The notes under the pieces: model-generated | Databases searched by the model: none | Told to the model about the DNA's origin: nothing | What the model saw: the letters and a program-made list of their open reading frames with translations, nothing else | Made by a program: the position numbers and the translations under genes | In this document: positions 2,604 through 48,666 of the stretch, piece by piece | Position numbering within the stretch: the first letter of the stretch is position 1 | Layout of the letters: each line of letters starts with the position of its first letter | Assembly (NCBI GenBank): GCA_937625935.1 | Contig: OW569396.1 | Location: 1 to 49,460 of the forward strand | Source: Tetramitus jugosus | Taxonomy: Eukaryota; Protista; Heterolobosea | Length of the DNA: 49,460 nt | Direction of reading: 5' to 3'

Positions 2604-2637
2604 ATTGATTGACTACATAAAAAAAAAATAAAAAAAA

Positions 2638-3813
2638 ATGTTTAATAAATTAAATAATATAATATTAGCAGACGCTAGTTTAAGAAGGGTATATCAATTT
2701 TTAGTATATTATCCAACACCACAAAATATAAATTATTTTTGGAATTATGGATTTATGGCAGGGATGTTTTTAGGTATACAATTAATTAGTGGTATATTTT
2801 TATCAATGTTTTATACACCACATATAGATTATGCATTTGATAGTGTACAACATATAATGAGAGATATAAATTATGGTTGGTTTATAAGATATGCTCATTC
2901 AAATGGAGCATCATTTTTTTTTATAGTAATTTATATACATATATTAAGAGGTATTTACTATGGATCATATTTAAAACCAAGGTTATTTGTATGGTTCTCT
3001 GGAGTAATTATTTATATTTTAATGATGGGTACAGCATTTTTAGGATATGTGTTGCCTTGGGGACAAATGAGTTATTGGGCAGCAACAGTAATTACAAATT
3101 TTTTAACTGTTATTCCAGTAATAGGTAAAGATGTAGTGTACTGGGTATGGGGAGGATATGCTATTAATAACTCAACATTAAATAGATTCTTTAGTTTACA
3201 TTATTTATTACCTTTTGTTATAGCTGTTTTTGCATTATATCATATATATACATTACATAAATCAGGTAGTTCAAATCCATTAGGAATAAGAACAAGTAAA
3301 TTAGATAAAGTAAACTTTTATCCATTTTTTTTAGTAAAGGATTTATTTGGTTTATTTATAGTTTTTATAGTATATATTATATTTGTAATATATTATCCAG
3401 AATTATTAGGACACACAGATAACAATATTAAGGCTAATCCACTAGTTACTCCAAGTCATATAGTACCAGAATGGTATTTTTTACCAATGTACGGTATTTT
3501 AAGATCAATTGAAAGTAAGACATATGGAATAATATTAATGTTTTTATCAATGTTAGTTTTATTTGTATTACCAGTTTTAGATAAAGGTAGTGAAAGAAAT
3601 AATCATTTCAGAATGTTTAATAGAATGATGTTTTGGTTATTTACATTTAATTTTATATTTCTAGGATATTTAGGTGGTCAATTACCAGTATATCCATATA
3701 TACAATTAGGTGTCATTTGCTCTCACTTTCACTTATTTTATTTTTTAATACTGCCTATTATAAATGGGGCCAAATTTCAAAATTATTTCACTTTATTTAA
3801 AGTAAAATATTAA
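2638..3813 (+). CDS. cob: Apocytochrome b
   Basis: HSNGASFFF, LPWGQMSYW, PEWY. Confidence 0.99.
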   Translation: MFNKLNNIILADASLRRVYQFLVYYPTPQNINYFWNYGFMAGMFLGIQLISGIFLSMFYTPHIDYAFDSVQHIMRDINYGWFIRYAHSNGASFFFIVIYIHILRGIYYGSYLKPRLFVWFSGVIIYILMMGTAFLGYVLPWGQMSYWAATVITNFLTVIPVIGKDVVYWVWGGYAINNSTLNRFFSLHYLLPFVIAVFALYHIYTLHKSGSSNPLGIRTSKLDKVNFYPFFLVKDLFGLFIVFIVYIIFVIYYPELLGHTDNNIKANPLVTPSHIVPEWYFLPMYGILRSIESKTYGIILMFLSMLVLFVLPVLDKGSERNNHFRMFNRMMFWLFTFNFIFLGYLGGQLPVYPYIQLGVICSHFHLFYFLILPIINGAKFQNYFTLFKVKY

Positions 3814-3909
3814 TTTTATATAAATATATACTGTAAATAAGTTTGTTTTTTGTGCGAAAAACATATAACCAATCCATGGATTAAATGGAAAAAAATTGAA
3901 ATAAAACTA

Positions 3910-5097
3910 ATGTTAGCTGAGCAATCTCAACAAATAAAAAATTTTATGTTGAATTTTGGTCCACAACATCCGGCGGCACATGGGGTATTGCGGTTAATAT
4001 TAGAATTAGATGGTGAGATAATAAAGAATGCTGATCCACATATAGGACTTCTACACAGGGGAACCGAAAAATTAATAGAGTATAAGACTTATGCACAAGC
4101 TTTACCATATTTTGATAGATTGGATTATGTCTCAATGATGTGTCAAGAGCATACTTTTTGTTTAGCTGCTGAAAAATTATTAAAATGCAAAATACCATTA
4201 AGGGCACAATATATACGTGTTATTTTTTCAGAAATAACACGTATATTAAATCATTTATTAGCAATCACTACACATGCTTTAGATGTAGGTGCTTTAACAC
4301 CGTTTTTGTGGGCTTTTGAGGAACGTGAAAAATTAATGGAATTTTATGAGCGTGTTTCTGGTGCAAGAATGCATGCTAATTATTTTAGAATTGGAGGAGT
4401 TGTGTATGATATACCTATAGGTTTATTAAAAGATATATCTATTTTTATACAACAATTTGCATCTAGAATAGATGAGATTGAGGAAATGCTTACTACTAAT
4501 CGTATTTGGAAACAAAGATTGATAGAGGTAGGTAAAGTTAATAGTCGACAAGCTATGGATTATAGTTTAAGTGGTCCAATGTTAAGATCTACTGGTATTG
4601 CTTGGGATTTACGTAAATCTGAACCTTATGAAATATACAGAAAGTTTTCTTTTGCTATTCCTACAGGTGTATGCGGAGATAGTTATGATAGATATCTTAT
4701 AAGAATAGAGGAGATGCGTCAGAGTATAAATATTATAAATCAAGCGATTAATCAAATTCCTTTAGGATTAGTAAGAGTAGATGATCATAAAATTACTCCA
4801 CCATATCGTAGTCAGATGAAAACATCTATGGAGTCATTAATACATCATTTTAAATTATATAGTGAAGGTATAAGTGTGCCTCAGGGTCATAGTTATGGTT
4901 GTGTAGAAGCACCTAAAGGAGAAACAGGTGCTTATTTGGTGTCTGATGGTGGTAATAAACCATATAGATGTAAAGTTCGTTCTCCTGGTTTTATGCATTT
5001 ACAGGCATTAAATAGTATAGTAGTAGGGCATATGATTGCTGATTTAGTTACCGTAATTGGTACTTTAGATATTGTTTTTGGGGAAGTTGACAGATAG
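3910..5097 (+). CDS. nad7: NADH dehydrogenase subunit 7
   Basis: [15 protein letters not shown] ... DIVFGEVDR; first ATG 3910 (ORF track begins at TTG 3850). Confidence 0.98.
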
Positions 5098-5167
5098 TTT
5101 TATACTATAAATTCGCATTATAAGCTTTTAGCACACATTACAAACAAAAAAAAAATATAAATAAAAC

Positions 5168-6253: not shown

Positions 6254-6305
6254 TTTTATTGGTTATAATTAATTTATTGATTACTTTTATATTTTTTTAT
6301 ACAAG

Positions 6306-6671: not shown

Positions 6672-6681
6672 TTGATTACAT
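6672..6681 (+). promoter_or_regulatory. TTGATTACWT upstream motif (representative copy; all copies listed in findings)
   Basis: TTGATTACAT, 29 nt before the nad4L ATG; 12 further copies at 27-30 nt spacing. Confidence 0.75.
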
Positions 6682-6700
6682 AACTAAATAAGTTAACAAT

Positions 6701-8950: not shown

Positions 8951-9089
8951 TTTTTATACTCTTTGTATATATTATATATTTATTGATTACTTTATATTTA
9001 TTTTTATCTGGTAAACTCTTTGTCCTATAAAAGATTCATTTAATGTTGTATGCAAAATATTATTAAAGTGCAAATTTTATTGTACTATT

Positions 9090-9421: not shown

Positions 9422-10135
9422 TTATAATTGACATATATATACATTATAAAGTAAGTAATACTGTAATATATAATTTGATAAATATATATATATATTTAAT
9501 GGACACATTATTAATAATATTAATACAGTAACAAATATAATATATATATTATTATTAAATATTATATACACTATTGTAATTAAAAAAATCCAAATATAAG
9601 ATATAAAAAATATATATAAGTATATATTTAAGTAATTTTGTAAATTTAAATTTACATCAAATATTATAAAATTAATTTCTTGATAATTATTATAAAAAGA
9701 ATTAAATATTAAAAATATAATATAATTATTATATATGAATATAAATAAATAAAAATAAAAAAATAAAAATACTGAAAATGCTGTAATGTAACTCATCTCA
9801 TGTTTATAAAAAGATGATTTAAAGTACATTAGTATTTGTATTATTATGAATGGCATTAATATTATAAAAGATATTATAATTATATAATACATTAATATAT
9901 AATTATAATCTTGTATTGAATAAGAGATCTGTAATGATGGAAGTATATAATTTTTAGTAGTATTTATTGGGTAAATAAATTCAGTATTTGAGATATTTAT
10001 AATATTTTTTATATATTTGTATGGTGTGAATGATAAATTTATTTTTGTTATTGGTATAAATATAAAAAGGAGAAAATAATCAAAATAAATAAAATAAAAT
10101 AATAATAGTGGTATTATTGAAAATAATATAATCAT
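9422..10135 (-). CDS. tatC: Twin-arginine translocase TatC (divergent)
   Basis: Hydrophobic ORF with MPFIIIQILMYFKSSFYKHE (TatC P....Q.w.F..p.ly..E); start set at ATG 10135 because the longer ORF overlaps trnR. Confidence 0.7.
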   Translation of the reverse strand: MIILFSIIPLLLFYFIYFDYFLLFIFIPITKINLSFTPYKYIKNIINISNTEFIYPINTTKNYILPSLQISYSIQDYNYILMYYIIIISFIILMPFIIIQILMYFKSSFYKHEMSYITAFSVFLFFYFYLFIFIYNNYIIFLIFNSFYNNYQEINFIIFDVNLNLQNYLNIYLYIFFISYIWIFLITIVYIIFNNNIYIIFVTVLILLIMCPLNIYIYLSNYILQYYLLYNVYICQL

Positions 10136-10441: not shown

Positions 10442-12757
10442 ATGAGAGTGCGACAAAATGATATAATAAATTCTTCATCATTACTATTCAATGTACCATC
10501 ATTGATAAATATTACAACATATAAAAAAAACAAGAAAATTACAAAGTTTGTATTATTGTCAGAATTAGTTTATATGATAATATTACAAACAAAAAATTAT
10601 AAAAAATTACATGAAAATATTTTAAGACAAATAAGTTATATAAAAAAAAAATTATTTATGTTGATTAAAGAAGAATTAGAAAAGGCAAACAGAGTAGATA
10701 TTTTAGTATTAAAAAAAAAATTATTGAGAAATAATATTTCTTATGATAGTTTTGTTGATTTTATATTGTTAGACAATAAAGGACTTAATATTTCTCACTA
10801 TTTAAGAAAACATTTTAAAGAGGAGATAGATCATATAAAATTAAAAATTAAAGATAATAGTGTATATATTAAATATATATATCTAAAGAAAATAATAACA
10901 TACTTAAATAGAATATTAAATGATAAATTAGATAAAATAAATTATTTTTTTTATAAAATAATTTATCAAGTGTTAAAAAATAAAAATAATAGATTAAAAT
11001 TAAAAATATTAATTACTAGAATTATCAAAATGTATACTTCAAAAGGTTTAAATATTGAATTAAGTAGACAACGATTACAAAGATACTTATTAAAATGTTT
11101 TAAAAAATCAAATAATTTTAATTATAAATATTTACCGAACTCTGATGAAACTAGTGTGAAAGAACGAAATGTATTAGTTATTCAAAGGGATAATGCAAGC
11201 TCAATTAAAGAGGTATTGAATTATATTGTTAAACATAAATATGGATTTGGTTATTATAAGTTTTATAGAGAATTAAAAGCACGTAACTTAGAAAATATTT
11301 CTATTATTGAATTATTTAAATTATTTGACAGAGTTAATAATAATACATTATTTGGTATCTTTAAAAATTTAAATATTAAAATAAACAATAAAAAAGAAAA
11401 TAAATTATTAACTATTAATAATGTAGAGTTAAATAATTATAGAGTTTTAAGAAAAAATAATTTATATTTTTTACAATCTGATTATCATACATATTATAAT
11501 AAAGATCTTTATGGTATTTATAATGTGTATAATTTTTTTAATAGTTTAATTAAACATAAAAAAAATGATAATTTTTTAGGTGTTTCTGATAAATTATTAG
11601 AATTATTTAGCAAGAGTTATTTAAAGTATATTTTTTTTAATTTTGAGTATACTGATTTAGGTGAAGAATCTATAGTTGCTTATGGCGCATTGAATGATTT
11701 ATATAGTTATATGAGTAGCAACAAATTAAAAAAAGTAAAAAAGCAAAATATACCTTTTGATATAAATTTAGATTTTTTTATTACAGACACTATTTCTTTT
11801 TATGATATTATAAAAAGAAAAAAACATATTGAAGAATTATTCATAAATAATATCTTAGAGCAAACAAGTAGTTATTTTTATAAAATAAAAAATATTTATT
11901 TAAATTATGATATAATTAAGTCTTTTAGTTTAGCAAATATTAATACTAGTCATAAATTATTAAACCTTTCAGATAATTTAAATCAAATACACATATACAG
12001 TATTTTAAATAATATTTTTCTTCGTTATTTTACTAAACTAAGAAAAATAATTTATATTAATATTAATAATATTTCTGATAATAATGTAATAACATTACTA
12101 CATAACAAAAAAATATTTAATGTAATTTCAGATACAATTTCAAATCATTTTAATGATAAAAATGATTTGTTAAATTTAAAAAAAAATATATTAAATGAAG
12201 AAGATAGTACTGAAAATATTAATTTAAATATATCTAAATTTCTTATAAAAATTGAATCAAATCTTTTAAATAAAACATTAATTGATCAAATACCTTTATT
12301 AGAGAAACAATATTTAAATAATACATTAATTTATAATAAAGAAACTATTGTGAATAAATCCGAATGTTTAATTAGTATTAATAATCATATTCTATATAAA
12401 ATTCGTAACAATATAAGTATCTTTTTTAAAAATAATATAGATAGTGAGATAAAATTATTTCATTTGCAGGAAAGTTTTAATAGTTTTTTTTTTAAAAGGT
12501 TAATTTCTTTTAATAATATACTTAAACTTTCAAAAAAAGAAACAAGATTTTTAATAAAAAATAATATAATGTTTTTTTTAAATACTAAAGATTATTTTGG
12601 TGAATTAAATACAGAACGTTTGATGAAAATAAATTATTCATTTTTATTGGATGATTATAGTAGAGTACTAACTAGCATTATTACATACACTACTACTGAA
12701 TTAGAAAAAATTACAAAATTTCAAGCTAAAAGAAAACAATCTAATCGTATATACTAA
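10442..12757 (+). CDS. rps4: Probable greatly expanded ribosomal protein S4 (771 aa)
   Basis: By-eye colinear matches to uS4: IVKHKYGFGYYKF..LFKLFDRVNN..FGIF, KLLTINNVELNNYRVLRKNNLY, and C-terminal INYSFLLDDYSR; followed, after tRNAs, by rps13-rps11. Confidence 0.55.
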   Translation: MRVRQNDIINSSSLLFNVPSLINITTYKKNKKITKFVLLSELVYMIILQTKNYKKLHENILRQISYIKKKLFMLIKEELEKANRVDILVLKKKLLRNNISYDSFVDFILLDNKGLNISHYLRKHFKEEIDHIKLKIKDNSVYIKYIYLKKIITYLNRILNDKLDKINYFFYKIIYQVLKNKNNRLKLKILITRIIKMYTSKGLNIELSRQRLQRYLLKCFKKSNNFNYKYLPNSDETSVKERNVLVIQRDNASSIKEVLNYIVKHKYGFGYYKFYRELKARNLENISIIELFKLFDRVNNNTLFGIFKNLNIKINNKKENKLLTINNVELNNYRVLRKNNLYFLQSDYHTYYNKDLYGIYNVYNFFNSLIKHKKNDNFLGVSDKLLELFSKSYLKYIFFNFEYTDLGEESIVAYGALNDLYSYMSSNKLKKVKKQNIPFDINLDFFITDTISFYDIIKRKKHIEELFINNILEQTSSYFYKIKNIYLNYDIIKSFSLANINTSHKLLNLSDNLNQIHIYSILNNIFLRYFTKLRKIIYININNISDNNVITLLHNKKIFNVISDTISNHFNDKNDLLNLKKNILNEEDSTENINLNISKFLIKIESNLLNKTLIDQIPLLEKQYLNNTLIYNKETIVNKSECLISINNHILYKIRNNISIFFKNNIDSEIKLFHLQESFNSFFFKRLISFNNILKLSKKETRFLIKNNIMFFLNTKDYFGELNTERLMKINYSFLLDDYSRVLTSIITYTTTELEKITKFQAKRKQSNRIY

Positions 12758-13635: not shown

Positions 13636-13667
13636 TTGAACACTTATATAAAGTATATAGAATAATT

Positions 13668-14511: not shown

Positions 14512-14679
14512 TTTATTTAATTTAATTAATAAGCAATTGTATATCAAATAATATATTTTTACTATAGTACTAACTTAAACTTTTATTAATTATGTGTAGT
14601 TAATTAATTGTATTATTAACTCTATATTGCATGTTCAATTGTATACTGATAACTTGTAATGTGTAATATTAAGTATACA

Positions 14680-17417: not shown

Positions 17418-17447
17418 ATTATTAAAAATTATTGATTACTTATTTAT
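17418..17447 (+). repeat. 30-bp dispersed direct repeat, copy 1
   Basis: ATTATTAAAAATTATTGATTACTTATTTAT, identical to 37604-37633. Confidence 0.85.
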
Positions 17448-17460: not shown

Positions 17461-18006
17461 ATGAATATTTTATTATTTGTTGGAGTGTTTATTGTAGTTT
17501 GTACTACACAAAATTTACTAGGCATTGGGTGTGATTCATCACAAGCTTTATTGGATAATGATTTAAAAGAAATTCATGATAAAGAAATGCAAGCTTTATT
17601 GGATCATGATTCAAGAGAAATTCATGATAAAGAAATGCAAGCTTATGATAAAGCAGAAAAAATGTTGTTAAAGCAACAAGAGATAGAAAAAGAAAGTGTA
17701 TTACAAATACAGTCTTTAATAACAGCTTCTTATGAAGCTGATTCTATTGTTCATGAGAAAATGTATAGAGTGGTATCAGCATACAGGGATCATCTTTGTG
17801 ACAACATAGAAAGAGATGGATTCTCATTAACTAGAGAAGATAGATCACTAGTTTTTTGTCAGGTTCATGATATGTTTATGGCGGTAATAGGTCAAGTTGA
17901 ATCTAAGAAAGAGGCATGCGAAATAGTTGATGCTTTGTATAATCAAAAAGTATTAAACAACATGGACGGTATAGAAGAAATTATTCAACGTACTAGAACA
18001 CATTAA
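17461..18006 (+). CDS. Orphan orf181 (hydrophobic N-terminus, acidic body)
   Basis: Intact ORF; TTGATTACTT motif 29 nt upstream of the ATG. Confidence 0.7.
   Translation: MNILLFVGVFIVVCTTQNLLGIGCDSSQALLDNDLKEIHDKEMQALLDHDSREIHDKEMQAYDKAEKMLLKQQEIEKESVLQIQSLITASYEADSIVHEKMYRVVSAYRDHLCDNIERDGFSLTREDRSLVFCQVHDMFMAVIGQVESKKEACEIVDALYNQKVLNNMDGIEEIIQRTRTH
17542..17644 (+). repeat. 48-bp in-frame tandem repeat (2 copies + 7 nt)
   Basis: Units start at 17542, 17590 and 17638 (CAAGCTT...) and encode QALLD(N/H)D(L/S)(K/R)EIHDKEM. Confidence 0.92.
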
Positions 18007-18307: not shown

Positions 18308-19957
18308 AGAGTAGGGTTTTATTCTGGCTCGGAGTGAATGCTACTGATATGCTTAACACATGCAAGTTGAACGTATCTTTTTAATGTTAGAATTCTTTTA
18401 TAAGAATAAGTAAAGATTTACGTAGCGAACGGGTGTAAAATGTAGATTGAATGTTACTTAAAAGTTTGGGATGATTGTTTTTACATAAATACCGAATACA
18501 ATTAAAGTATTTAATATAAATAGTACTTATAATAAAGGCTTATAAAGTCGCTTTTAAATACGCATCTATAGTTTTAGGTAGTTGGTGTGGTAATGGCACA
18601 CCAAGCCAGACATGCTTAGCTGTTCTGAGAGGATGTACAGCCACATAGAGACTGAGACAAGGCTCTGGCTCCGTTTGGAGGCAGCAGTGGGGAATCTTGG
18701 GCAATGAGCGAAAGCTTGACCCAGCAATATCAATAGAGTGAACGAAGATTTTTAATCGTAAAACTCTTCCTTTAGCTAAGATTATGACTTAAACTAAAGA
18801 TTAGCGCTGGCAAAATCTCGTGCCAGCCGCCGCGGTAATACGGGTAGCGCTAGTGTTATTCCTCTTGATTGGGCGTAAAGGGTGTGTAGGCGGTATAATA
18901 AGTTAGAAATGAAAGACTATGCTTATCAATTGTAAATTTCTAAAACTATTATACTAGAGTAATATGAAAGATAGCGGAACCTTTAACATCAGAGTTGAAA
19001 TGCGTATACATTAAAGGGAACCCCGAAGGCGAAAGCAGCTATCTATTTATTTCTGACGCTGAGGCACGAAGGCATGGGGATCAAATAGGATTAGATACCC
19101 TAGTAGTCCATGCTGTCAACGATGAGTATTAAATGTCTTACTATTTAGTGGGATGTTACAGCTTACGCGTTAAATACTCCGCCTGGGAAGTACGATCGCA
19201 AGATTGAAACCTTAAGAAATTGACGGAGGTTAGTTGCAAGCGGTGGAGCATGTGGTTTAATTTGATAAAACGCGTAGAATCTTACCAATCTTTGATATAT
19301 CCATAATAGATAGTTAGAACTTATTATTTATAATAAACTAAAGACTTGTCTTTCTATCTCATAACATATTTATTTAAAATATGTTATGAATCTTTGTAAA
19401 ATATTTTTTTTTTAGAATATTTGCTTATATAAAAATTGGATACAGATGCTGCATGGCTGTCGTAAGGCCGTGCTGTGAAGTGTTAGATTAATTTCTTTCA
19501 ACGGCCACAACCCCTATCCTAAGTTGTTTTACTATTCAGTAAAGAGAAACTTGGGATATTGCCTACGTAATGTGGGATGAAAGTAGGGACGACGTCAAGT
19601 CATCATGGCTCTTATAGATTGGGCTACACATGTGCTACATTGGTAGATACAAAGAGAAGCAAAGATGTGAATCTGAGCAAATCTAAAAAATCTATCTTAG
19701 TTCGGATTGTTCTCTGAAACTCGAGAACATGAAGTTGGAATCGCTAGTAATCGTGGATAAGAACGCCACGGTGAATTTGTCACCTAACCTTGTACATACC
19801 GCCCGTCACGTCACGAAAGTTGGTTGTTCTGTAGGTTGTATTTAAATTTATTATAATTATTTATTAATGAAATAAAGTATCAGTACAATCAAAGGGTGAT
19901 CGATGATTGAGATGAAGTCGTAACATGGTAGGCGTAAGGGAACTTGCGCCTGGAATA
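18308..19957 (+). rRNA. rns: Small subunit rRNA (ends approximate)
   Basis: GTGCCAGCCGCCGCGGTAATAC, ATTAGATACCC, GTACATACCGCCCGTC, AAGTCGTAACA. Confidence 0.97.
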
Positions 19958-19966
19958 ATGTAAATT

Positions 19967-20043
19967 GTTGGAGTAGATTAAATTTTTAGGAAAATCGTCA
20001 GACTCATGATCTGAAGACACTGGTTCAAGCCCAGTCTCCAACT
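19967..20043 (+). tRNA. trnM: tRNA-Met(CAU), probably initiator
   Basis: TCAGA-CTCATGA-TCTGA; A11:U24 as in fMet tRNAs. Confidence 0.88.
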
Positions 20044-24144: not shown

Positions 24145-24213
24145 ATTTTTTTGATACAATTTGATATTTTATTTATTGTAAACGAATACACTACTATTTT
24201 TTTTATATATTAT

Positions 24214-26379
24214 ATGCAGAAATATTTAAATTGGAAACGTTTACTAGTTAAGTACATTAAATACAAAAAAAAAGGTGATTATTTTTTAACTCTTCAAAAT
24301 ATTAAATATTATAATAGTAATTTATTTCAATATAAGTATAAATATTATAATCGTTTATTGCAAAAACAAATATCTTCTGGTTTTTTTTTCCCTAGTGTAG
24401 AAATTCAAAATGTTGAAAATTATTATTTAGGAAAGCATTTTATTGTGCATAATACTCTTGATTATTTTAAGGATAGTTTAAATAAGTATTTAAAAAAAAA
24501 AAAATCAATATACAAGTACAATTATAATACAGCGGAACCATTAAATTCATATTTAAATATTTTTTGTACATTATGTAGTATTGAAAATGTTTATTCTTTT
24601 TATAATTTTTCTAATGTTATGTATTTTATGGACTACGATCACACAGAAGTAGATTTAATGAATTTTGTACATTTTGATTATACTGGAGGTTCTTCTGAGA
24701 TATTACATCTAGTATTATTTCATAATGATATTATTTATAATAACTTTAGTTTTGAATTTTTTGAAAATAAAAATACTATTTCCGCTCATTATATACGTAC
24801 TTCTAAATTATTTGATCTTAATTCTTCTATTTTCACCGAGATGTTAATAAGTAATTCTAATAGTAAAGTATGTTATAATAATTATGCTAGTTATGATTAT
24901 TTACATTCATATTTTTTTTTAAATATGAGGGATAAATTAAAAAAAAATATAAAATATGAATTACAAAAAAGATATACAGAAAAATTAGAATACTTAGCTG
25001 AATTTAAAATTAGAATGGAAGAATATTTAGCGCGTATAAAAGAAGAAACAAGAATAAAATCTGATAAAAGTATTGGAGAAAAACAGAAAGAAAGATTAAT
25101 AATTGAAGGGCACCGTAAACAAAAAGAGGCTGAAACACAAAGAGCAGAATTTAAAGAAAAAACAAGTAAAGAGTTTATACTTACTCAAATTGATTTTTCT
25201 AATTATACATATTTCAAGCCGTCTTTAAATGATGTACATAGTCTACCGATTAATAATTTTGATTATTTATCTAATTTAAATAATACTAATAAATTTATTA
25301 GTAATAATATATATCAGTATGAATATGAAAATATAAATAATCAAATTTCTATTTATGATAAAAATACAAAATCAGGTGCAATTAATTCTATAGTAGATAA
25401 AATTAGTATTAATAACTTAAATTATTATGAATTAAATATACAAGAACCTATCAATAAAGAATTACAGTTAAAACAAAATAAATATAATTTTGAAAAATAT
25501 AATAAATTTTTTATGGATTTATTGAATGGATTATTAAATTATTCTGAATTACGTAGCTTTGATATTGAAAATTTATATAAAAGTAAAAATAAATTTGAAA
25601 GATTATTTAGTAATAGATTTAAGATATTAAAAATTATGTATAATAATTATAAATTAAATACTAAATTTCCAATTAAATATTTATATTTTTCAAAGTCTAA
25701 AGTACAAACTAGTAGTAACATTAGTAATAACACTATATTATATTATCGAAAAAAAAATATATATGTTCAACTATTAATTCCTAGAATTAGTAATTTATTA
25801 TATTATCCTTCCTCATACTTTTTTGATGCAAAGCATAATTATTACACTTATTGGGATATTAACTGTCTATATTATAAATTTTTAGGTTTTTTAATTAAGC
25901 ATGGTAAAAGACATAAAGCAGAATCTATATTAAGTAATAGTTTTTCTTTTCTAAAGAACTTAAGTTTATGTAATCCATTATATTTATTTATGAAGGCTAT
26001 TTATAATGGTCAAACTTTTTTTGAATTTACAAAACAAAAAAAACAGACTAAATCTATTTTAATTCCTAGATTTGCACCTTTAAATAAACGAGTTAGAATT
26101 TCTATGCGTTTAATTACTCAAAATATTAGAGATCATGATAATTTACGTAAAATGAAAAAATCAAAAAAATATAAAGTAAGTACTTCTTATTTATTATCAA
26201 ATATACTTATTTCTTATTTTTTCAAAATAGGTAAAGTAAAAACTGATCTAAAAACTAATGTAACTAGTGCTTTTAAGCAAAAACATTTATTACGAAAAAA
26301 TGTTGGAATATTTGTATACAATAGATTATTAAAATTTTTAGCTTTTCGTAAAATTAGAGGATATCATATTAGCAAATAG
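24214..26379 (+). CDS. rps7: Ribosomal protein S7 domain with very long N-terminal extension
   Basis: C-terminal KFLGFLIKHGKRHKAESIL..NPLYLFMKAIYN..LIPRFAPLNKRVRISMRLI; first ATG 24214 (TTG 24151 possible). Confidence 0.75.
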   Translation: MQKYLNWKRLLVKYIKYKKKGDYFLTLQNIKYYNSNLFQYKYKYYNRLLQKQISSGFFFPSVEIQNVENYYLGKHFIVHNTLDYFKDSLNKYLKKKKSIYKYNYNTAEPLNSYLNIFCTLCSIENVYSFYNFSNVMYFMDYDHTEVDLMNFVHFDYTGGSSEILHLVLFHNDIIYNNFSFEFFENKNTISAHYIRTSKLFDLNSSIFTEMLISNSNSKVCYNNYASYDYLHSYFFLNMRDKLKKNIKYELQKRYTEKLEYLAEFKIRMEEYLARIKEETRIKSDKSIGEKQKERLIIEGHRKQKEAETQRAEFKEKTSKEFILTQIDFSNYTYFKPSLNDVHSLPINNFDYLSNLNNTNKFISNNIYQYEYENINNQISIYDKNTKSGAINSIVDKISINNLNYYELNIQEPINKELQLKQNKYNFEKYNKFFMDLLNGLLNYSELRSFDIENLYKSKNKFERLFSNRFKILKIMYNNYKLNTKFPIKYLYFSKSKVQTSSNISNNTILYYRKKNIYVQLLIPRISNLLYYPSSYFFDAKHNYYTYWDINCLYYKFLGFLIKHGKRHKAESILSNSFSFLKNLSLCNPLYLFMKAIYNGQTFFEFTKQKKQTKSILIPRFAPLNKRVRISMRLITQNIRDHDNLRKMKKSKKYKVSTSYLLSNILISYFFKIGKVKTDLKTNVTSAFKQKHLLRKNVGIFVYNRLLKFLAFRKIRGYHISK

Positions 26380-31487: not shown

Positions 31488-31574
31488 TTTTCATTAATAA
31501 TTAATTGGTTACATTATAAAGTATTAACTATTAGTAGTTGCATTAGTAGATTACATTATGTATTTTATATTTTT

Positions 31575-32429: not shown

Positions 32430-32524
32430 TTAATTTGTTATATTGATTTTTTTATATTCTTTGTCCTAAAAAAGATTCAAATTAGTTGTTGATTTTTATT
32501 AAAAAATATAAAAATACATGTAAC

Positions 32525-32743: not shown

Positions 32744-32829
32744 TATATTATTAAATATATTATTTAGTATCATTTAACAATATTTTTATATTTATTATTT
32801 ATTGATTACATAAATTATTATTATTTTTT

Positions 32830-33291: not shown

Positions 33292-33329
33292 TTATTTTTA
33301 TTGATTACTTATTTTATACATATATATAT

Positions 33330-34313: not shown

Positions 34314-34365
34314 TATTTTATTACTAATATTTTTTTTTTGATTACTTTTTTTTATAATTAATATT

Positions 34366-37136: not shown

Positions 37137-37196
37137 GTAGTATATTAATGTTTGTTTATTATAATATTGATTACATATTTAAATATAATATATAAT

Positions 37197-37603: not shown

Positions 37604-37633
37604 ATTATTAAAAATTATTGATTACTTATTTAT
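37604..37633 (+). repeat. 30-bp dispersed direct repeat, copy 2
   Basis: Identical to 17418-17447. Confidence 0.85.
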
Positions 37634-37902
37634 AAAAGTATATAGTAAGTAGTATTAGATATTACTTATAAATAGACTGAACTTTTAGTAATTCTAAAAA
37701 AATAGAAGTTTTTAACTGTTATTGAAGTTAATTATTTAGAAGCACTATTTCTAATACTACTGATGAAGTATTAGCAAGAGAAATATTTGAAGACTTTTTA
37801 AATTTATAAGTTGTGTATGTTTAATTAATATTAATTTATAACTTTAATTTGATAACTTATAAATTTTTACAAATCGTTTGGATTATTTTTTATTTTGTTT
37901 AA

Positions 37903-38978: not shown

Positions 38979-40868
38979 ATGAGTCGTCTTAGTAATTTAA
39001 ATACTTTAAAAATCGGTATTTTTGGTAATTGGTATTCTTCTTGGTATGATCGTGAATTTTATAATTTTTTAGTTTTTAGAGATTATAAATTAATACAATA
39101 TTTAAACTCTGTTTTTTATCGCCTTCGTTTACCAACTTCACATTTTTATATTAATAGAATTAATCAAAAGTATTATTACATCGAATCAAATATATATATT
39201 ACTAAACATACTTTTAGAAGATTTACTAAATCAGTGCATACATATAAAGATATATTTAAATATATATCTTTAATTGAATATTTATTTGATTCTGTTTTTT
39301 TATTGCCTAAAGATTCTATTTCAGGAATAAGTATTAATAAATTTATTTTTGAATTTGATACTTTTTATTATTTTTTATATTATTTTTTTAATAATTATAA
39401 TACTTTAAATTTAAATAGTAATATATTATTAAATAGATTTTCTTATTTTTATTATATTAATCATTTATTGGTTAATTCTTGTATTAACTTTTTCCCTGTT
39501 AAATATAATGTACAACTAAATATATTTTCTAATTTTTTTAAAATTAACAATACATTAAAAAATAAATTTATCCGCAATTACTCTGAATTAAATAAAAAAA
39601 AGTTAAATATTAAGAAATTAAATTATTTTTATTTAAATTCTTTTTTTCTAAGCTCCAGTAATATTAGTTTATTTAATTATATAATTAATATTAATTATGC
39701 TAATACTATTAATTTATTACATAGATTATTATTTAAATTCATTTTTAAATTTTTATTTATTTTTCTAAATATCTATATAATTATCGTATATAATTTTAGA
39801 TATTACAAAATAAATAAAAATTTACTAAAATGTGAAAATTTTTTAATAAGTAGTTACTATTATTTAAAAAAAATAAATATTATTTGTAATTATAAATTAA
39901 TTATTAAAAATAATGTAAAATTATTTTTAATGTATAATTTTAATAATTATTCATTTAGTTCTATTTTAGATTCAAAAAAAACTAGAAGCACTTACATAAT
40001 TAATCATGAAAATGTTTCAAATAATTATATACATAATAAATTTAATAAGTATTTAAATTTATTATTAAGTAATAAAAATAATTTATTTGGTTTTTTATAT
40101 ATACAAGATTTTGATGAATTTTTTAAAAAATCTATTAATAATAGTATTACAGTTGAAAATGATCAAATAGATGCTATTTATTATAAACAAGTAAATCATT
40201 TTAACAATTTTTTTAAGCGTATATATGTATATTTTTATAAAAAATTCTTTAATTTTTTTCATTTGTCTATAGAGTACACAATTTCTAGTTTTACTGGATT
40301 ACAATGTTTTTTTTTACCTACATATTATATTAAAACATTTCCAATCTTTGATACTAAATTATTATTAGATTATATTTCATATAACTTAAAAAGAAGACAT
40401 CATATTACTAAAATATTTAATAAAATTTCATTATTGCAACAAAAACATAATTCTGATGTTTCTAAATCATTTATTAATTTATTTAATGAATTTTCTGATT
40501 TAAAAAAAAATGCATTAAAATTTAATAAATTTTTACCATATTTTAATTTAGGTGAAATATATCAAACTTTAAATGTAAATAATATATATAGTGATCAAAT
40601 AAAAAAAAAAAAAAATCCAATTTCAGGTATACGTATAGAATTTAGTGGACCTCCTAAAAAAGCTGAAAGGACTGCATTAGTGGCATATCATGATATTATA
40701 CAAGATTATAGACTAATTGGTAAAATGCCAACACATAGTGTTTATGCAGATATACATTATTATCAGTCATACATTAAATTAAAGAGATCTACTTTTGGTA
40801 TTAAAATTTGGTTATTTTATTATACTCGTATTCTAAATTGCAATAATGTTAATAAAACTATTTTATAA
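38979..40868 (+). CDS. rps3: Ribosomal protein S3 with large internal expansion
   Basis: N-terminal LKIGIFGNWYSSWY; C-terminal GIRIEFSG ... FGIKIW; position between rps19 and rpl16. Confidence 0.88.
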   Translation: MSRLSNLNTLKIGIFGNWYSSWYDREFYNFLVFRDYKLIQYLNSVFYRLRLPTSHFYINRINQKYYYIESNIYITKHTFRRFTKSVHTYKDIFKYISLIEYLFDSVFLLPKDSISGISINKFIFEFDTFYYFLYYFFNNYNTLNLNSNILLNRFSYFYYINHLLVNSCINFFPVKYNVQLNIFSNFFKINNTLKNKFIRNYSELNKKKLNIKKLNYFYLNSFFLSSSNISLFNYIININYANTINLLHRLLFKFIFKFLFIFLNIYIIIVYNFRYYKINKNLLKCENFLISSYYYLKKINIICNYKLIIKNNVKLFLMYNFNNYSFSSILDSKKTRSTYIINHENVSNNYIHNKFNKYLNLLLSNKNNLFGFLYIQDFDEFFKKSINNSITVENDQIDAIYYKQVNHFNNFFKRIYVYFYKKFFNFFHLSIEYTISSFTGLQCFFLPTYYIKTFPIFDTKLLLDYISYNLKRRHHITKIFNKISLLQQKHNSDVSKSFINLFNEFSDLKKNALKFNKFLPYFNLGEIYQTLNVNNIYSDQIKKKKNPISGIRIEFSGPPKKAERTALVAYHDIIQDYRLIGKMPTHSVYADIHYYQSYIKLKRSTFGIKIWLFYYTRILNCNNVNKTIL

Positions 40869-43034: not shown

Positions 43035-43609
43035 TGATACATAACTATTGTTCTTTTTTATATTTTTTTCTGTATAATTATGTATATATTTATATTGAGC
43101 GTGGAAATATTATATGTGTTAGTAAATTAGGTAGTTTTAAATGTAAATTTAATTTATATTTTTTTTTATACAATAGTAATAGTTTATTTATTTTTAAATT
43201 TTTTTTAATTAATTCATTAATAATTTTTAATGACTTGAAACAATACACTAAAAATAAAATTAATTTTCAATTATTTATTTCTTTATTTTTAGTATCTATT
43301 TTTTCAGGTTTTAGAGCTAAGTTTAAAATACATGGTAGAGGTTACAAATTACATAAAAAAAATAATAATTTAGTTTTTAAATTAGGATATAGTCATTTAA
43401 TTTTTAAAACTTTAGATTTTGCTTTATTTTTAAAAAAAAAAGAAAAAAAAAAAGTTTTTTATACACTAATTTCCCTAAACCATCAATTGTTAACTAATAC
43501 TATTAGTACTTTTAGATCGTTTAGAATACCTAATATATATACTAAAAAAGGTATATTAAATAATACTAAAAAAATAATATTTAAAATTGGTAAGATTAAT
43601 ATGGTTTGA
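43034..43609 (+). CDS. rpl6: Ribosomal protein L6
   Basis: GRGYK, LGYSH, RIPNIYTKKG. Confidence 0.9.
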   Translation: MIHNYCSFLYFFLYNYVYIYIERGNIICVSKLGSFKCKFNLYFFLYNSNSLFIFKFFLINSLIIFNDLKQYTKNKINFQLFISLFLVSIFSGFRAKFKIHGRGYKLHKKNNNLVFKLGYSHLIFKTLDFALFLKKKEKKKVFYTLISLNHQLLTNTISTFRSFRIPNIYTKKGILNNTKKIIFKIGKINMV

Positions 43610-43633
43610 TTACTTATTAGTTCGTATTTTATT

Positions 43634-44584: not shown

Positions 44585-44656
44585 TTGCGTATAGCTCAGC
44601 GGTAGAGCAATTGACTTTTAATCAATTGGCCGTAAGTTCAAATCTTACTACGCACA
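44585..44656 (+). tRNA. trnK: tRNA-Lys(UUU)
   Basis: ATTGA-CTTTTAA-TCAAT; U1xC72. Confidence 0.95.
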
Positions 44657-44661
44657 TATGT

Positions 44662-44733
44662 TACAGTGTAGCCAAGTGGTAAGGCATACGGTTTTGGTCC
44701 GTATATACGTGGGTTCGATTCCTTCCACTGTAA
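44662..44733 (+). tRNA. trnQ: tRNA-Gln(UUG)
   Basis: TACAGTG/CACTGTA acceptor; loop TTTTGGT. Confidence 0.93.
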
Positions 44734-44785
44734 TTTAGTTTACTAGTCATGAGATTTATCTCATGAAATTAATTATAAAATTATT

Positions 44786-45283
44786 ATGAAAAATAAAAAA
44801 AATATAATTGAACAAAAACAATCAGTAAAAACTCTTGAAGTTCTAGTAAAATTAAATATTAATTCTATGGAAGCTTCTAGTAAAGAACCTATCGGTCCTA
44901 CTTTAGGTCAGTATGGTTTACCTATTAATGATTTTTGTAATTTATTTAATAATTCTTCTACTATTTATGAAGAACAAGTACCTTTAAGGGCGCACATATA
45001 TATATACACAGATAAAACATTTGAATTAACAATCAATATTCCTACATTATATTATTTTTTAAAATCTTCTTTATCTTTAGAAGAAATAGATTTAATTAAA
45101 TTTAAAAGAAAACCTGGTTACATTGATTTAAGAACTATTTATTTGCCTATATTTAATAAAAATATGGTATATACAATACTTAAATATGTTACTGATAATC
45201 TTATATTTGTTATTAATTTAAAAAGTTTATTTAAGAAAATTCTTGGTATCATTTATTCTTCAGGTTTTTTTTTTTTTGCTTGA
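44786..45283 (+). CDS. rpl11: Ribosomal protein L11
   Basis: PIGPTLGQYGLPINDFCNLFN. Confidence 0.93.
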   Translation: MKNKKNIIEQKQSVKTLEVLVKLNINSMEASSKEPIGPTLGQYGLPINDFCNLFNNSSTIYEEQVPLRAHIYIYTDKTFELTINIPTLYYFLKSSLSLEEIDLIKFKRKPGYIDLRTIYLPIFNKNMVYTILKYVTDNLIFVINLKSLFKKILGIIYSSGFFFFA

Positions 45284-45308
45284 TTACATTTGTTCTATCT
45301 AAGTCGTT

Positions 45309-46208
45309 TTGTTTGTTGGCTTTTTAGATAAAATTCATAGTAGTTTATTGCACTATTATCGAGAATTAAATCTTAAACGAATAAATTTAATAAATGAGAA
45401 ATTTATTAAATTTCCAAATACTGACGACTTTATTTGTTATCGTATTTTTAAATACGATAGTACTATTCGTGAAAAACCGTCAGTAGATACTTTCTTTTTG
45501 AGAGCACATGAACATGCACCAATGCTATTGGATACTTTAATATATTTAAAAGATATTAAAGATGATTCTTTAGCATTTAGACGTTCTTGTAGGGAAGGTA
45601 TTTGTGGTAGTTGTGCTATGAATATTAATGGAGTAAATGCATTAGCATGTACATATCGGATAGATCAACATGTATCATATATTTTTCCATTTTTAAATAT
45701 TTATCCATTGCCACATATGGTAATTGTTAAAGATTTAGTCATTGATATGAAACATTTTTATAATCAATATCGTTCTATTAATCCATTTTTAATTAAACCT
45801 TATGAAGTTAGGCTAATTTCAGATATTTCAAATAGTGTACATAATATTAGTGTATACGTTTCTAGACCAACTATTGAGAATTTGCAGTCAGATTCTGATA
45901 GACGTATGTTAAATGGTTTATATGAATGTATATTATGTGCTTGTTGTACAACAAGTTGTCCTAGTTATTGGTGGCACACTGAAAAATACTTAGGTCCTGC
46001 TGTATTATTACAGGCATATAGATGGATAATAGATTCTAGAGATTTATCATTTGAATCTAGATTAGAATTTTTGAATGATACTTATAAATTAAAAAGATGT
46101 CATTTAATATTAAATTGTATCAGATGTTGCCCTAAAAAATTAAGTCCTGCAACAGCTATATCTAACATTAAGTATATGATACACTTATATAATGTTGAAA
46201 AAGTATAA
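45309..46208 (+). CDS. sdh2: Succinate dehydrogenase iron-sulfur subunit
   Basis: RRSCREGICGSC, CILCACCTTSCPSYWW; TTG start 29 nt after the motif. Confidence 0.97.
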   Translation: MFVGFLDKIHSSLLHYYRELNLKRINLINEKFIKFPNTDDFICYRIFKYDSTIREKPSVDTFFLRAHEHAPMLLDTLIYLKDIKDDSLAFRRSCREGICGSCAMNINGVNALACTYRIDQHVSYIFPFLNIYPLPHMVIVKDLVIDMKHFYNQYRSINPFLIKPYEVRLISDISNSVHNISVYVSRPTIENLQSDSDRRMLNGLYECILCACCTTSCPSYWWHTEKYLGPAVLLQAYRWIIDSRDLSFESRLEFLNDTYKLKRCHLILNCIRCCPKKLSPATAISNIKYMIHLYNVEKV

Positions 46209-46249
46209 AAATTATTTAAATTGACAACATTATATCTTATTTTTATTAT

Positions 46250-46798
46250 ATGAGCAAATATTTAATTTCATTATTACCAAATTATATATTTAATATTCAT
46301 AAAAAAGAATATTATTATATTACTACACATAAACAATATTTAAATAATTTATTGAGTTTTTTTTTTTTACATATGAATACTCAAGTTAAGATTTTTGTAG
46401 ATTTATGTACTATTGATTTAATTCAGAATAAAAGTAGATTTTTATTAGTGTATCAATTTTTATCCCATTATTTTCATAATCGATTTTTTATTAAAATTAA
46501 TTTCAGTGAAATAGATAGCGTATATTCTATTTGTTCATTATTTCCAAGTGCTTCTTGGTACGAACGAGAATCTTGGGATTTATTTGGTATAAATTTTATA
46601 GGTAATCCTGATATGCGACGTATACTTACAGATTATGGATTTCAAGGATTTCCATTGCGTAAAGATTTTCCACTAAGTGGTTTTGTAGAAGTATCTTATT
46701 GTGAAATGATTAAGAACATTAAATACTCTTCTATTAGTTTTATACAAGAATTTCGTTTATTTGATACTAAAAGCCCTTGGGAGTTTTATCATAAATAA
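46250..46798 (+). CDS. nad9: NADH dehydrogenase subunit 9
   Basis: WYERESWDLFG, RRILTDYGFQGFPLRKDFPL. Confidence 0.97.
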   Translation: MSKYLISLLPNYIFNIHKKEYYYITTHKQYLNNLLSFFFLHMNTQVKIFVDLCTIDLIQNKSRFLLVYQFLSHYFHNRFFIKINFSEIDSVYSICSLFPSASWYERESWDLFGINFIGNPDMRRILTDYGFQGFPLRKDFPLSGFVEVSYCEMIKNIKYSSISFIQEFRLFDTKSPWEFYHK

Positions 46799-46825
46799 CT
46801 GATTACTTCCCTGTTACATTTTTTA

Positions 46826-48352
46826 ATGTATTATAATCATAAATTAATATCTAATAATTTTCAAAAAATAGGAGCAACAATAAAAATTGTTGTTTTTTTT
46901 TTATTTAATATTTTAAATATACTAGATAGGTATTTAAATATTAGTAGTGTTTATAATTATTTTATAAAGATTCCAGTTCCTTTAATTATTTCTTGGATAT
47001 CACATATTTTTTTTAGTATTATTTGGATAATGTTTGATCCATTTCATTTAGGTTTTCAACATTGCATTCAAATAAATATTTATGATTTATATTTAAATTT
47101 TGGTATTGATGGATTGTCATTATTTTTTATATACCTTATTTCTTTTTTATTACCATTATGTTTAATACATATATATTATTCTAATAATTTAACTTTTTCA
47201 GCAAGAAGTTCTTATGGTGTTGCATTGTTAAGTATTAGTTTTTTATTGGTTATAGTATTTTATACTTTAGATTTATTAGTTTTTTATATTTTTTTTGAAG
47301 GTATTTTAATACCTTTTTTTGCATATATTGGTATATCTGGATATAAAAAACGAAGAGTACATGCTTCATTTTTATTTTTTTTCTATACTTTATTTGGATC
47401 ATTATTTATGTTGATTTCTATTTTTTCTATATATTTACATACTGGTACTACTGATTTAGAATTACTTTGGTTAAGTGAGTATAGTAGCATCAATGAACAT
47501 TTTATTTGGTTTGCTTTTTTTCTATCATTTGCTATTAAAGTACCGATGTTTCCTTTTCATATTTGGTTACCTGAAGCTCATGTAGAAGCCCCAACTGAAG
47601 GTTCTGTTTTTTTAGCTGCTATTTTATTAAAATTAGGAACTTATGGCTTTTTACGTTTTTTATTTCCTATTTTTCCAAATGCAACTTATTATTTTTCACC
47701 ATTAGTACTATTAATGGCTACTCTTTCTGTATTTTATACTTCTTTAACTACATTAAGACAAATAGATATAAAAAAAATTATAGCTTATTCTTCTGTAGCG
47801 CATATGAATGTATGTATGATTGGACTGTTTTCATTTCACATTACTTCTTTAAATGGTTCTATTTTTTTAATGATCGGACATGGTATCGTTTCAGCTGGTT
47901 TATTTTTTATGGTTGGTTTTTTATACAATAGATATCATAGTAAAATAATTAAATACTATAGTGGACTAGTTCAAACTATGCCACTATTTTCAATTTTTTT
48001 TTTCTTATTTTTATTAGGTAATATTAGTATGCCATTAACTAGTAACTTTATAGGTGAGTTATTAGTTATAATAGGAACTTTTAATTCTGAAAATTATATA
48101 CCTTTATTTTTTGTGGGTTTTAGTATTTTAATATGTTCTATATATTCTTTATGGTTATACAATAAAATGATTTTTTTAATGCCAAATAATAGATTTATTC
48201 AACATTACTTTGATCTTAATTTTTTAGAATTAAGTATAGTTTTACCACTAGTTCTATTTATGTTATTTTTAGGTATTTATCCAAATCCATTTTTTCAAAT
48301 AATTAATCCTGCGGTTAATTATAATTTTTTTGAATTATTAAGTATTCATTAA
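46826..48352 (+). CDS. nad4: NADH dehydrogenase subunit 4
   Basis: KVPMFPFHIWLPEAHVEAPT, IAYSSVAHM. Confidence 0.98.
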   Translation: MYYNHKLISNNFQKIGATIKIVVFFLFNILNILDRYLNISSVYNYFIKIPVPLIISWISHIFFSIIWIMFDPFHLGFQHCIQINIYDLYLNFGIDGLSLFFIYLISFLLPLCLIHIYYSNNLTFSARSSYGVALLSISFLLVIVFYTLDLLVFYIFFEGILIPFFAYIGISGYKKRRVHASFLFFFYTLFGSLFMLISIFSIYLHTGTTDLELLWLSEYSSINEHFIWFAFFLSFAIKVPMFPFHIWLPEAHVEAPTEGSVFLAAILLKLGTYGFLRFLFPIFPNATYYFSPLVLLMATLSVFYTSLTTLRQIDIKKIIAYSSVAHMNVCMIGLFSFHITSLNGSIFLMIGHGIVSAGLFFMVGFLYNRYHSKIIKYYSGLVQTMPLFSIFFFLFLLGNISMPLTSNFIGELLVIIGTFNSENYIPLFFVGFSILICSIYSLWLYNKMIFLMPNNRFIQHYFDLNFLELSIVLPLVLFMLFLGIYPNPFFQIINPAVNYNFFELLSIH

Positions 48353-48419
48353 TAATTTATATTTATTTTTCCTATGAACGTGATACATTTTTCATTTACT
48401 ATATATATAATATCTTATT

Positions 48420-48632
48420 ATGGCTGCTCCTAAAAAAAAAAAAACTCATATGAGAAAAAATATTAAATATAAAAAATCAAATAATGTATTATTAAATAGA
48501 GTATTTGGTTTTAAAATGCAAAAAAATCGATTTATGAACCATACTATTGATTATTTTACTAATAGTCAGCGTATTTCTCATGTAGATGAAAGTAGATTAA
48601 AACTTCGAACAGATGATGCAAGATTTAAATAG
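48420..48632 (+). CDS. rpl32: Ribosomal protein L32
   Basis: MAAPKKKKTHMRKN N-terminus typical of bL32. Confidence 0.75.
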   Translation: MAAPKKKKTHMRKNIKYKKSNNVLLNRVFGFKMQKNRFMNHTIDYFTNSQRISHVDESRLKLRTDDARFK

Positions 48633-48666
48633 TTGACTACTTAAGAATCATATTATATTATATACT

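Follow-up and report, generated by a model that had tools for sequence, protein, structure and literature searches.

A conserved ten-nucleotide box upstream of start codons in Tetramitus-clade mitochondrial DNA, a candidate signal for translation initiation

The box and its distance to start codons

The mitochondrial DNA of Tetramitus jugosus analysed here (49.46 kb, the whole of which we call the window) carries a 10-nt box, TTGATTAC(A/T)T, upstream of protein-gene starts (Table 1). The exact form, TTGATTACWT, occurs 12 times, in every case on the plus (coding) strand and never within a coding region except across a stop codon. All 16 boxes listed in the initial annotation have the coordinates and distances given there, 13 of them at 27–30 nt from the start codon and those of rps11, cox2 and nad2 at 32–34 nt, and the overlaps it reported with the TGA stops of rpl6 and rpl11 are real. 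The list had passed over three perfect boxes (715, 8983 and 37618) and two weaker copies (31505 and 37849), and the gene names rpl10 and rps11 are without Pfam support, their basis being position and conservation. Box carriers amount to 16 of about 47 ORFs, or about a third; "genome-wide", as the box had been described, is thus an overstatement for a signal that does recur at many genes.

Table 1. Boxes and the SSU rRNA 3′ tail in the window (distances run from box start to start codon unless stated otherwise; letters denote related genomes)
Feature	Position	Strand	Context
Orphan perfect box	715..724	+	24 nt 3′ of nad2 stop; no ORF downstream
cob box (TTGACTACAT)	2609..2618	+	29 nt 5′ of ATG 2638; orthologous box at 31 nt in genome C
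nad3 box	6277..6286	+	29 nt 5′ of ATG
nad4L box	6672..6681	+	Adjoins nad3 stop; 29 nt to ATG; 34 nt in genome F
Orphan perfect box	8983..8992	+	33 nt 3′ of nad5 stop; 107 nt 5′ of orf103
Putative rps11 variant box (TTGAACACTT)	13636..13645	+	32 nt to ATG; TTGAATACTT at 30 nt in genome F
cox2 weak box (CTGATAACTT)	14646..14655	+	34 nt to ATG 14680
orf181 box	17432..17441	+	29 nt upstream; orf181 lineage-specific
SSU rRNA 3′ tail (GGAAUAAUGUAAAUU)	19952..19966	+	No anti-Shine-Dalgarno CCUCC; weak pairing with 3′ half of box
Second, weaker box (TTGGTTACAT)	31505..31514	+	42 nt 5′ of atp3 box
atp3 box (TAGATTACAT)	31547..31556	+	28 nt to ATG; 32 nt to homologous TTG in genome C
atp4 box	32802..32811	+	28 nt to ATG; also in genomes B, C, D, E
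atp8 box	33301..33310	+	29 nt to ATG; also in genomes B, C, D, E
nad8 box	34338..34347	+	28 nt to TTG 34366; 32–33 nt in genomes B, C
orf132 box	37167..37176	+	30 nt upstream; orf132 lineage-specific
Orphan perfect box	37618..37627	+	Within ~29-nt copy of orf181 leader
Variant box (TTGATAACTT)	37849..37858	+	54 nt 5′ of rpl2
Putative rpl10 box	43606..43615	+	Overlaps rpl6 TGA; 28 nt to start; 31 nt in genomes B, E
sdh2 box	45280..45289	+	Overlaps rpl11 TGA; 29 nt to TTG 45309
nad9 variant box (TTGACAACAT)	46221..46230	+	29 nt to start; perfect, 30–35 nt in genomes B, C, D
nad4 box (CTGATTACTT)	46799..46808	+	27 nt to start; 29–33 nt in genomes B, C, D
nad2 box (TTGACTACTT)	48633..48642	+	34 nt to ATG 48667; 30–33 nt in genomes B, C, D

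With a weight matrix trained on 39 sites from five related genomes only, we found a box 26–36 nt upstream in 11 of 42 ATG-start genes of T. jugosus (two TTG-start genes and two ORFans were excluded), compared with a mean of 0.23 and a maximum of 3 box-bearing genes in 1000 dinucleotide shuffles of the leaders. The standard deviation of the box-to-start distance was 1.7 nt, against 21 nt for the distance from the upstream stop to the box, which ranged from −3 to +60 nt in T. jugosus; the box is anchored to the downstream start, as had been claimed. Depletion of the box from the sense strand of coding sequence was not significant (14 observed vs. ~20 expected; p = 0.07–0.4 across thresholds, with about 0.07–0.09 at the loosest and weaker values at stricter ones).

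No box precedes cox1, atp1, atp6, atp9, cox3, nad1, nad5, nad7, nad11 or most of the r-protein genes in T. jugosus, and the tRNA-free junctions cob-nad7, cox2-atp1 and nad8-cox1 also lack one. By junction size, boxes were present in 0/9 junctions of 20 nt or less, 12/13 of 21–65 nt and 3/15 of more than 65 nt, in bins that were set post hoc with the data already known. Gene starts would appear to fall into three classes: those coupled to the previous gene, those with a box, and those with a long leader of their own.

The box in related mitochondrial genomes

The box recurs upstream of orthologous genes in five other mtDNAs across the clade (genomes B to F; atp3 65–84% identical). Together, the six genomes yielded 55 box-start pairs with a median distance of 31 nt and a minimum of 27 nt. 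In 51 of the 55 the distance was 27–37 nt, placing 17–27 nt between the box end and the start codon, and the remaining four had spacers of 41–47 nt. The minimum implies that at least 17 nt are left free between box and start. The preferred distance differed between genomes (29, 31, 33, 33.5 and 34 nt; Kruskal p = 6e-4), so the fixed spacing of ~29 nt in the initial annotation holds in T. jugosus but not in the relatives, where medians are 31–34 nt and the four long spacers occur. Looping-out of a long spacer by a hairpin in genome B scored no better than in shuffles (z −0.2).

The box also travels with the downstream gene in rearrangements, as seen for cox2, atp4 and nad6 in genome E, whose relocated cox2 has a perfect box 36 nt upstream. 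New, lineage-specific ORFs have a box upstream in four genomes; genome F lacks an orf181-like ORF between atp1 and trnS. At the 5′ ends of tRNA and rRNA genes we found one marginal match among 67, and the lone minus-strand gene had no box upstream in two genomes. We found no box in 21 kb of Naegleria mtDNA, and searches of viral contigs with atp3 and of genome contigs with nad7 returned no useful relatives.

Start codons, orphan boxes and transcript ends

Three genes have a UUG start at the ruler distance from the box: sdh2 and nad8 in T. jugosus, and atp3 in genome C, where the TTG start is confirmed by homology. From TTG 45309, sdh2 encodes about 300 aa, in line with orthologues of 287–300 aa whose box lies 29–33 nt before an ATG. 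Starting nad8 at TTG 34366 adds a 75-codon N-terminal extension, a frame that was open in only 5 of 20,000 shuffles; near the orthologues' start position, T. jugosus nad8 has neither an ATG nor a second box. In all three genes the box corrects the annotated start. ATGs at +11 to +16 from the box are bypassed, including an out-of-frame ATG at +11 in atp3, and an in-frame ATG at +13 in cox2 is probably skipped.

Three of the 12 perfect boxes in T. jugosus, those missing from the earlier list, have no start codon at the ruler distance, and these orphans lie 23–33 nt 3′ of stop codons. The box at 715 has no counterpart at the same place in genomes B, C and D, and that at 8983 is missing in genome F. 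The ORF behind the orphan at 37618 looks decayed; in the cox1-rpl2 interval, genome B has a similar orphan box and genome D an intact boxed ORF.

Orphans behind stop codons would suit a box that only protects RNA ends, acting as a PPR10-type exonuclease barrier whose spacing reflects ribosome clearance and which does not position the start. The box has the geometry of chloroplast PPR footprints (PMC3326301), and its overlap with the rpl6 and rpl11 stops would fit overlapping 5′ and 3′ ends. Clearance, however, accounts for a minimum distance and not for the tight upper limit (27–30 nt in 13 of 16 T. jugosus boxes), and end protection does not explain why the UUG starts and the extension of nad8 are linked to the box, which makes this reading improbable in our estimation.

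The same three orphans are also consistent with a processing ruler, in which a box-bound protein guides an endonuclease to a site at a defined distance 3′ of the box. Cleavage there would give a nearly leaderless mRNA, and the upstream RNA would keep the box at its 3′ end, as with the dodecamer in yeast. All conserved genes but one lie on one strand, so that long precursors must be cut or internally read, and boxes are mostly found at tRNA-free junctions, both of which speak for cleavage. We nevertheless regard this as a rather poor prospect, since the cox3 box of genome C lies 26 nt 3′ of trnS, where tRNA excision already yields an end, many tRNA-free junctions (including the three named above) are boxless, and the sequence 3′ of the box shows no conserved cut site.

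The one-sided distances and the skipped ATGs suit equally well an RNA 5′ end about 20–27 nt after the box start. Such ends could arise from a DNA promoter at which an accessory factor binds the box, with TFAM-like geometry, and a phage-type polymerase starts ~20–27 nt after the box start, making a short-leader or leaderless mRNA for each boxed gene. A sharp 27-nt floor with a long tail is expected from a fixed start site with variable leaders, orphan boxes 54–114 nt upstream of a gene would then mean longer leaders, and ATGs close to the box would not be part of the transcript. Position 9, where A and T are interchangeable, would suit minor-groove reading of DNA, and one nuclear phage-type polymerase was found. 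We still consider a promoter unlikely. The box is missing at rRNA and tRNA genes, at cox1, atp9, atp1 and atp6, and at the only minus-strand gene, which must own a promoter; no offset 3′ of the box has a fixed purine; and a leaderless RNA is unlikely to use a UUG start.

Phage-type mitochondrial promoters (yeast ATATAAGTA, plant CRTA, TFAM sites) generally drive rRNA and tRNA genes and keep no fixed distance to start codons. The box is likewise short, strand-specific and upstream of genes, but it does not precede rRNA or tRNA genes and keeps a ruler-like distance to the start codon. It also resembles a bacterial −35 element (TTGACA), a resemblance without a reader, as Sigma70_r2 had no match in the assembly and no rpo gene is among the window's ORFs. 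An antisense reading of the box as a yeast-like promoter, suggested by AAGTA in its reverse complement, was rejected because the required flanks are not conserved and the tie to start codons is left unexplained.

A possible protein-read site at the mitoribosome

The SSU rRNA 3′ tail, GGAAUAAUGUAAAUU, contains no CCUCC, in agreement with the initial annotation. An alternative Shine-Dalgarno interaction, with AAUGUAA of the tail pairing with UUACAUU, nonetheless has some features in its favour: as many as 7 pairs are possible between the T. jugosus tail and the ACAU variant of the box, the mean tail-pairing energy in T. jugosus is minimal at the box (−3.5 kcal/mol), and the tail reads AUGU in the box clade and AGGU in the box-less outgroup. 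Past AUGU, however, the tail varies (AAAUU, CAAU, UAUUC) and the box stays constant, with no covariation. The U at position 9 in half of the boxes is a mid-helix mismatch with the tail, the invariant UUGA has no partner there, and the conserved 9-nt core pairs with the tail at only −1.5 kcal/mol. Finally, a spacing of 17–27 nt is far outside the Shine-Dalgarno range of about 5–10 nt, and we deem such pairing highly improbable. Bacterial and jakobid Shine-Dalgarno sequences resemble the box in that a single motif serves many genes at a set start distance and tolerates UUG starts; here, by contrast, the rRNA tail lacks CCUCC, no rRNA partner covaries with the box, and the spacing is about three times longer. 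Internal rRNA complements of the box (the universal AGUAAUCG and a helix-44 stretch) were discarded, being present in the box-less outgroup too or not conserved in the clade.

We infer that the box acts as RNA and is read by a protein that touches the ribosome, and give an even chance to a single nucleus-encoded protein binding the box and thereby keeping the mRNA at the exit of the mitoribosome. The element UUGAUUAC(A/U)U on the mRNA would be recognised by a single nucleus-encoded, sequence-specific RNA-binding protein, with PPR or other helical-repeat proteins the obvious candidate class. On the box, this protein would sit about 20–30 nt 5′ of the start, immediately outside the ~16 nt under the initiating mitoribosome, and dock at the small-subunit mRNA exit. 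The P site would thereby receive a codon lying 17–27 nt downstream of the box. Box and protein would take over the role of the lost Shine-Dalgarno pairing; the bound protein may additionally shield RNA ends, as PPR10 does. The nuclear genome has about 26 PPR loci; the plant PPR code applied to them matched no protein to the box, the repeats being too degenerate. The ruler-like expression signal at the downstream start proposed in the initial annotation gains support from the statistical tests and from the conservation of the box in the five other mtDNAs, and of the three mechanisms it had offered, the protein-bound RNA element for translation initiation would fit best and a general per-gene promoter worse.

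The one-sided minimum of 27 nt matches yeast, whose mitoribosome protects 16 nt upstream and whose activators bind about 30 nt upstream (PMC12916500). Like the sites of Pet111, Aep1/Aep2/Atp25, Aep3 and Pet309 (PMC12916500), the box lies ~30 nt upstream, beyond a 16-nt footprint, in a system with no Shine-Dalgarno pairing, and its distance would likewise set the start codon. In contrast to yeast, where each mRNA has its own activator set (published in 2025; PMC12916500) and the UTRs are gene-specific and partly folded, the box is a linear 10-nt motif common to about 16 genes and new ORFs, with a putative factor. Chloroplast PPR footprints have their 3′ edge 20–60 nt upstream of the start, and the PPR10 and HCF152 sites, like the box, are short, conserved and intercistronic, with the 3′ edge at least about 20 nt before the start (PMC3326301). 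As there, overlapping RNA ends may be defined at the box, and translation may be helped by it; those proteins have few sites each, with longer footprints at 20–60+ nt, whereas the box is 10 nt long and tightly spaced at a third of the genes.

Start-codon choice in mitochondria without Shine-Dalgarno pairing is settled in few lineages. Our literature search, which covered a smaller part of the subscription literature and included heterolobosean papers, found no description of the box, just as the initial annotation knew of none; as far as the papers searched show, it is the first cis-signal for heterolobosean mitochondrial gene expression, whatever the mechanism. That Tetramitus-clade mitochondria use one general factor and a 10-nt word as a protein-read Shine-Dalgarno replacement for about a third of their reading frames seems to us somewhat short of an even bet. 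If they do, UUG starts would be permitted, newly arrived ORFs would receive a ready-made start signal, and cox1, atp1, atp6 and atp9 would retain their own leaders. A single word at a ruler distance, found clade-wide in cultivable amoebae, makes start choice directly testable in Discoba, with one RNA bait and 16 internal replicates in T. jugosus.

One short motif common to many mRNAs is also found in the S. cerevisiae dodecamer with Rmd9 and the S. pombe C-core, each served by one PPR protein and anchored at the upstream gene's 3′ end. The box, unlike these, is tied to the downstream start: its position relative to the upstream stop varies from −3 to +60 nt (SD 21 nt), and it moves with the downstream gene.

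The upstream box in the window and in related mtDNAs

All 16 positions at which the initial annotation had placed the box TTGATTACWT (W = A/T), taken there for a ruler-like expression signal, were verified. Exact matches number 12, every one on the coding strand and in non-coding sequence, save for two overlapped TGA stops. To reduce circularity, a weight matrix was built from 39 sites of other genomes and then applied to the window; these sites were initially picked by resemblance to the annotated consensus, so that the motif definition is shared and the data are independent. Matrix matches lay 26–36 nt upstream of 11 of 42 ATG-start genes vs. 0.23 in shuffled leaders, where the maximum over 1000 shuffles was 3 genes. 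The distance from box start to start codon varies little (SD 1.7 nt, vs. 21 nt from the upstream stop), in line with the proposed anchoring to the downstream start. The description 'genome-wide' was too broad, as 16 of ~47 ORFs have a box. Three perfect boxes with no start codon behind them (orphans) and two weaker copies add to the original list (see table).

A search with atp3 placed 17 close relatives in a single clade (support 100/100), with Naegleria and Pleurostomum outside; we infer that this clade is the genus Tetramitus. We compared 20–30 kb of mtDNA each from genomes B, C, D and E (atp3 identity to the window 84%, 71%, 65% and 65%), which together represent the clade's main branches, and from genome F (atp1 92% identical). 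The box recurs upstream of the same genes (atp4, atp8, nad8, rpl10, sdh2, nad9, nad4, nad2, cob, nad4L and rps11), and some relatives add nad6, cox3, rps8 and rps12. Across 54 sites, G3, A4, C8 and T10 never vary, position 9 is split evenly between A and T, and the flanks are unconserved except for a slight A bias immediately 5′ of the box. Among 55 box-start pairs, the median distance is 31 nt and the minimum 27 (51 at 27–37 nt), with medians that differ between genomes (29, 31, 33, 33.5 and 34 nt; p = 6e-4). Two unusually long spacers in genome B (46–47 nt) both start with ATATCCT and have a higher GC content than the remainder. No box was found in a 21-kb portion of Naegleria lovaniensis mtDNA that has many shared genes, and four further distant heterolobosean-like loci held two isolated matches only, at 44 and 61 nt.

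Linkage to the downstream gene

The box travels with the gene that follows it. In genome E, the relocated cox2 lies between rps2 and atp3 and is boxed at 36 nt, and atp4, now after atp3, retains its box; lineage-specific ORFs are boxed at 29–41 nt in four genomes. One such ORF of the window, orf181, is absent from the close genome F; it contains a tandem duplication, and its N-terminus varies between strains with 99% identical atp1. UUG starts also lie at box distance: TTG 45309 gives sdh2 a length matching its orthologues, and from TTG 34366 of nad8, where the window has no ATG near the orthologues' start, 75 additional codons stay open (5 of 20000 shuffles). The boxed TTG of genome C atp3 aligns with the ATG of other genomes. 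Since ATGs 11–16 nt past the box start are bypassed in four leaders, the start codon is not simply the first AUG downstream.

Sorted by gap in bins set post hoc, boxes occur at 0 of 9 junctions of ≤20 nt, 12 of 13 of 21–65 nt, 3 of 15 of >65 nt and 1 of 8 after an RNA gene. This sorting suggests three classes: coupled starts in abutting genes, boxes where the gap is of medium size, and, for cox1, atp1, atp6, atp9 and others, leaders of their own. Orphan boxes may be remnants of lost ORFs: 37618 lies inside a copy of the orf181 leader, ahead of a decayed-looking frame, and at the corresponding site of genome D the boxed ORF is intact.

Possible modes of action

The initial annotation offered a protein-bound site, non-Shine-Dalgarno initiation or a promoter; the geometry suits an RNA-bound protein, and a general promoter fits poorly. 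The box spans about −29 to −20 in the window, and its closest approach to the start is 17 nt. The yeast mitoribosome covers 16 nt upstream, with activators bound ~30 nt upstream, aligning the mRNA (PMC12916500), and chloroplast PPR footprints stop 20–60 nt ahead of starts (PMC3326301). Because the box geometry matches a protein on RNA just outside the initiating ribosome, we favor, at roughly even odds, an RNA site that many genes share and that one nucleus-encoded factor binds; this factor would set the position of the ribosome and may also protect RNA ends.

The sharp minimum and tail of longer distances would also fit an RNA end 20–27 nt past the box start, with orphans heading long leaders. 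Such an end could come from a promoter with an upstream-binding factor, which we consider unlikely, or from a ruler-guided cut, which appears quite improbable; the UUG starts and the absence of boxes before RNA genes speak against both. Against a general promoter, 67 scored tRNA and rRNA 5′ ends gave one marginal match, the lone minus-strand gene has no box within 600 nt in two genomes, and no position after the box has a fixed purine. Within the limits of the assembly (26.35 Mb, 56 contigs, of which the window is one entire contig), a sigma-70 −35 box is excluded, since a single phage-type polymerase and no sigma factor are present. Pairing with the SSU rRNA tail, which the ACAU variant could in theory form, is weak, and the tail changes while the box stays constant.

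In its working, the box is closest to the yeast translational-activator site and the PPR footprint, but lacks the gene-specificity of both; by three tests it does not qualify as a Shine-Dalgarno motif. None of the ~26 nuclear PPR loci could be assigned to the box by the PPR code, for which their repeats are too degenerate. Two of them (L182 and L185, on contigs C52 and C3) encode proteins with a three-repeat period of ~102 aa, like PLS-class editing factors, and this mtDNA may undergo C-to-U editing. The box is not described in the open literature searched, heterolobosean papers included, a coverage mostly outside subscription papers.

Other leader elements and gene content

The second word TCTTTGTCCT..AAAAGATTCA, a candidate gene-specific leader element, is conserved in part: genomes C and D retain pieces of it in the leader of atp9, and genome F ahead of orf103. 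TCGTTTGG, upstream of rpl2, is a word different from the box at a similar distance; genomes B and C keep it at 32 and 46 nt. The rps7 leader word, present in five genomes, is either a motif in its own right or a degenerate form of the box. In plain folding, the GC-rich atp6 leader had no clear advantage over shuffled sequence (z −1.0).

Features outside the original list of boxes
Feature	Position	Strand	Remark
Orphan boxes	715, 8983, 37618		perfect
Additional box copies	31505, 37849		weaker
Long spacers, genome B (L001)	10537-10586, 11055-11103
TCTTTGTCCT..AAAAGATTCA	32456-32490; 9016-9040		atp9 leader; before orf103
TCGTTTGG	37875-37882		~28 nt upstream of rpl2
A(C/T)GAA(T/A)A(C/A)	24181-24191		rps7 leader, 27-45 nt
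atp6 leader	1013-1143		follows trnI
TatC-like ORF (weak)	10135-9422 (also given as 9422-10135)	-	Pfam E 0.27; 61% identical in genome F
uS7	24214-26379		721 aa
Putative uS4	10442-12757		771 aa
uS3	38979-40868		629 aa
tRNA-Met-like gene	19967-20043		unusual D arm; adjoins SSU rRNA 3′ end
Duplication in orf181	17542-17637		48 nt, tandem

Mitochondrial genes of the window include atp3, sdh2, cox11, nad8 and nad11, plus two rRNAs and 20 tRNAs, and every conserved gene except one, the weakly TatC-like ORF, is on the + strand. The leader of the TatC-like gene is antisense to trnR. The tRNA-Met-like gene, kept in relatives, is detected by Rfam and not by ARAGORN. uS7, putative uS4 and uS3 are far longer than their bacterial counterparts (uS7 reaches 1037 aa in genome E); uS7, sited at the mRNA exit, could participate in leader reading, and its extension is poorly conserved. 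Finally, an amoebal mtDNA contig in GCA_029240795.1 (L007), whose atp3 product is named as a 'Haloplasmataceae bacterium' MAG protein, is likely contamination of a bacterial bin.
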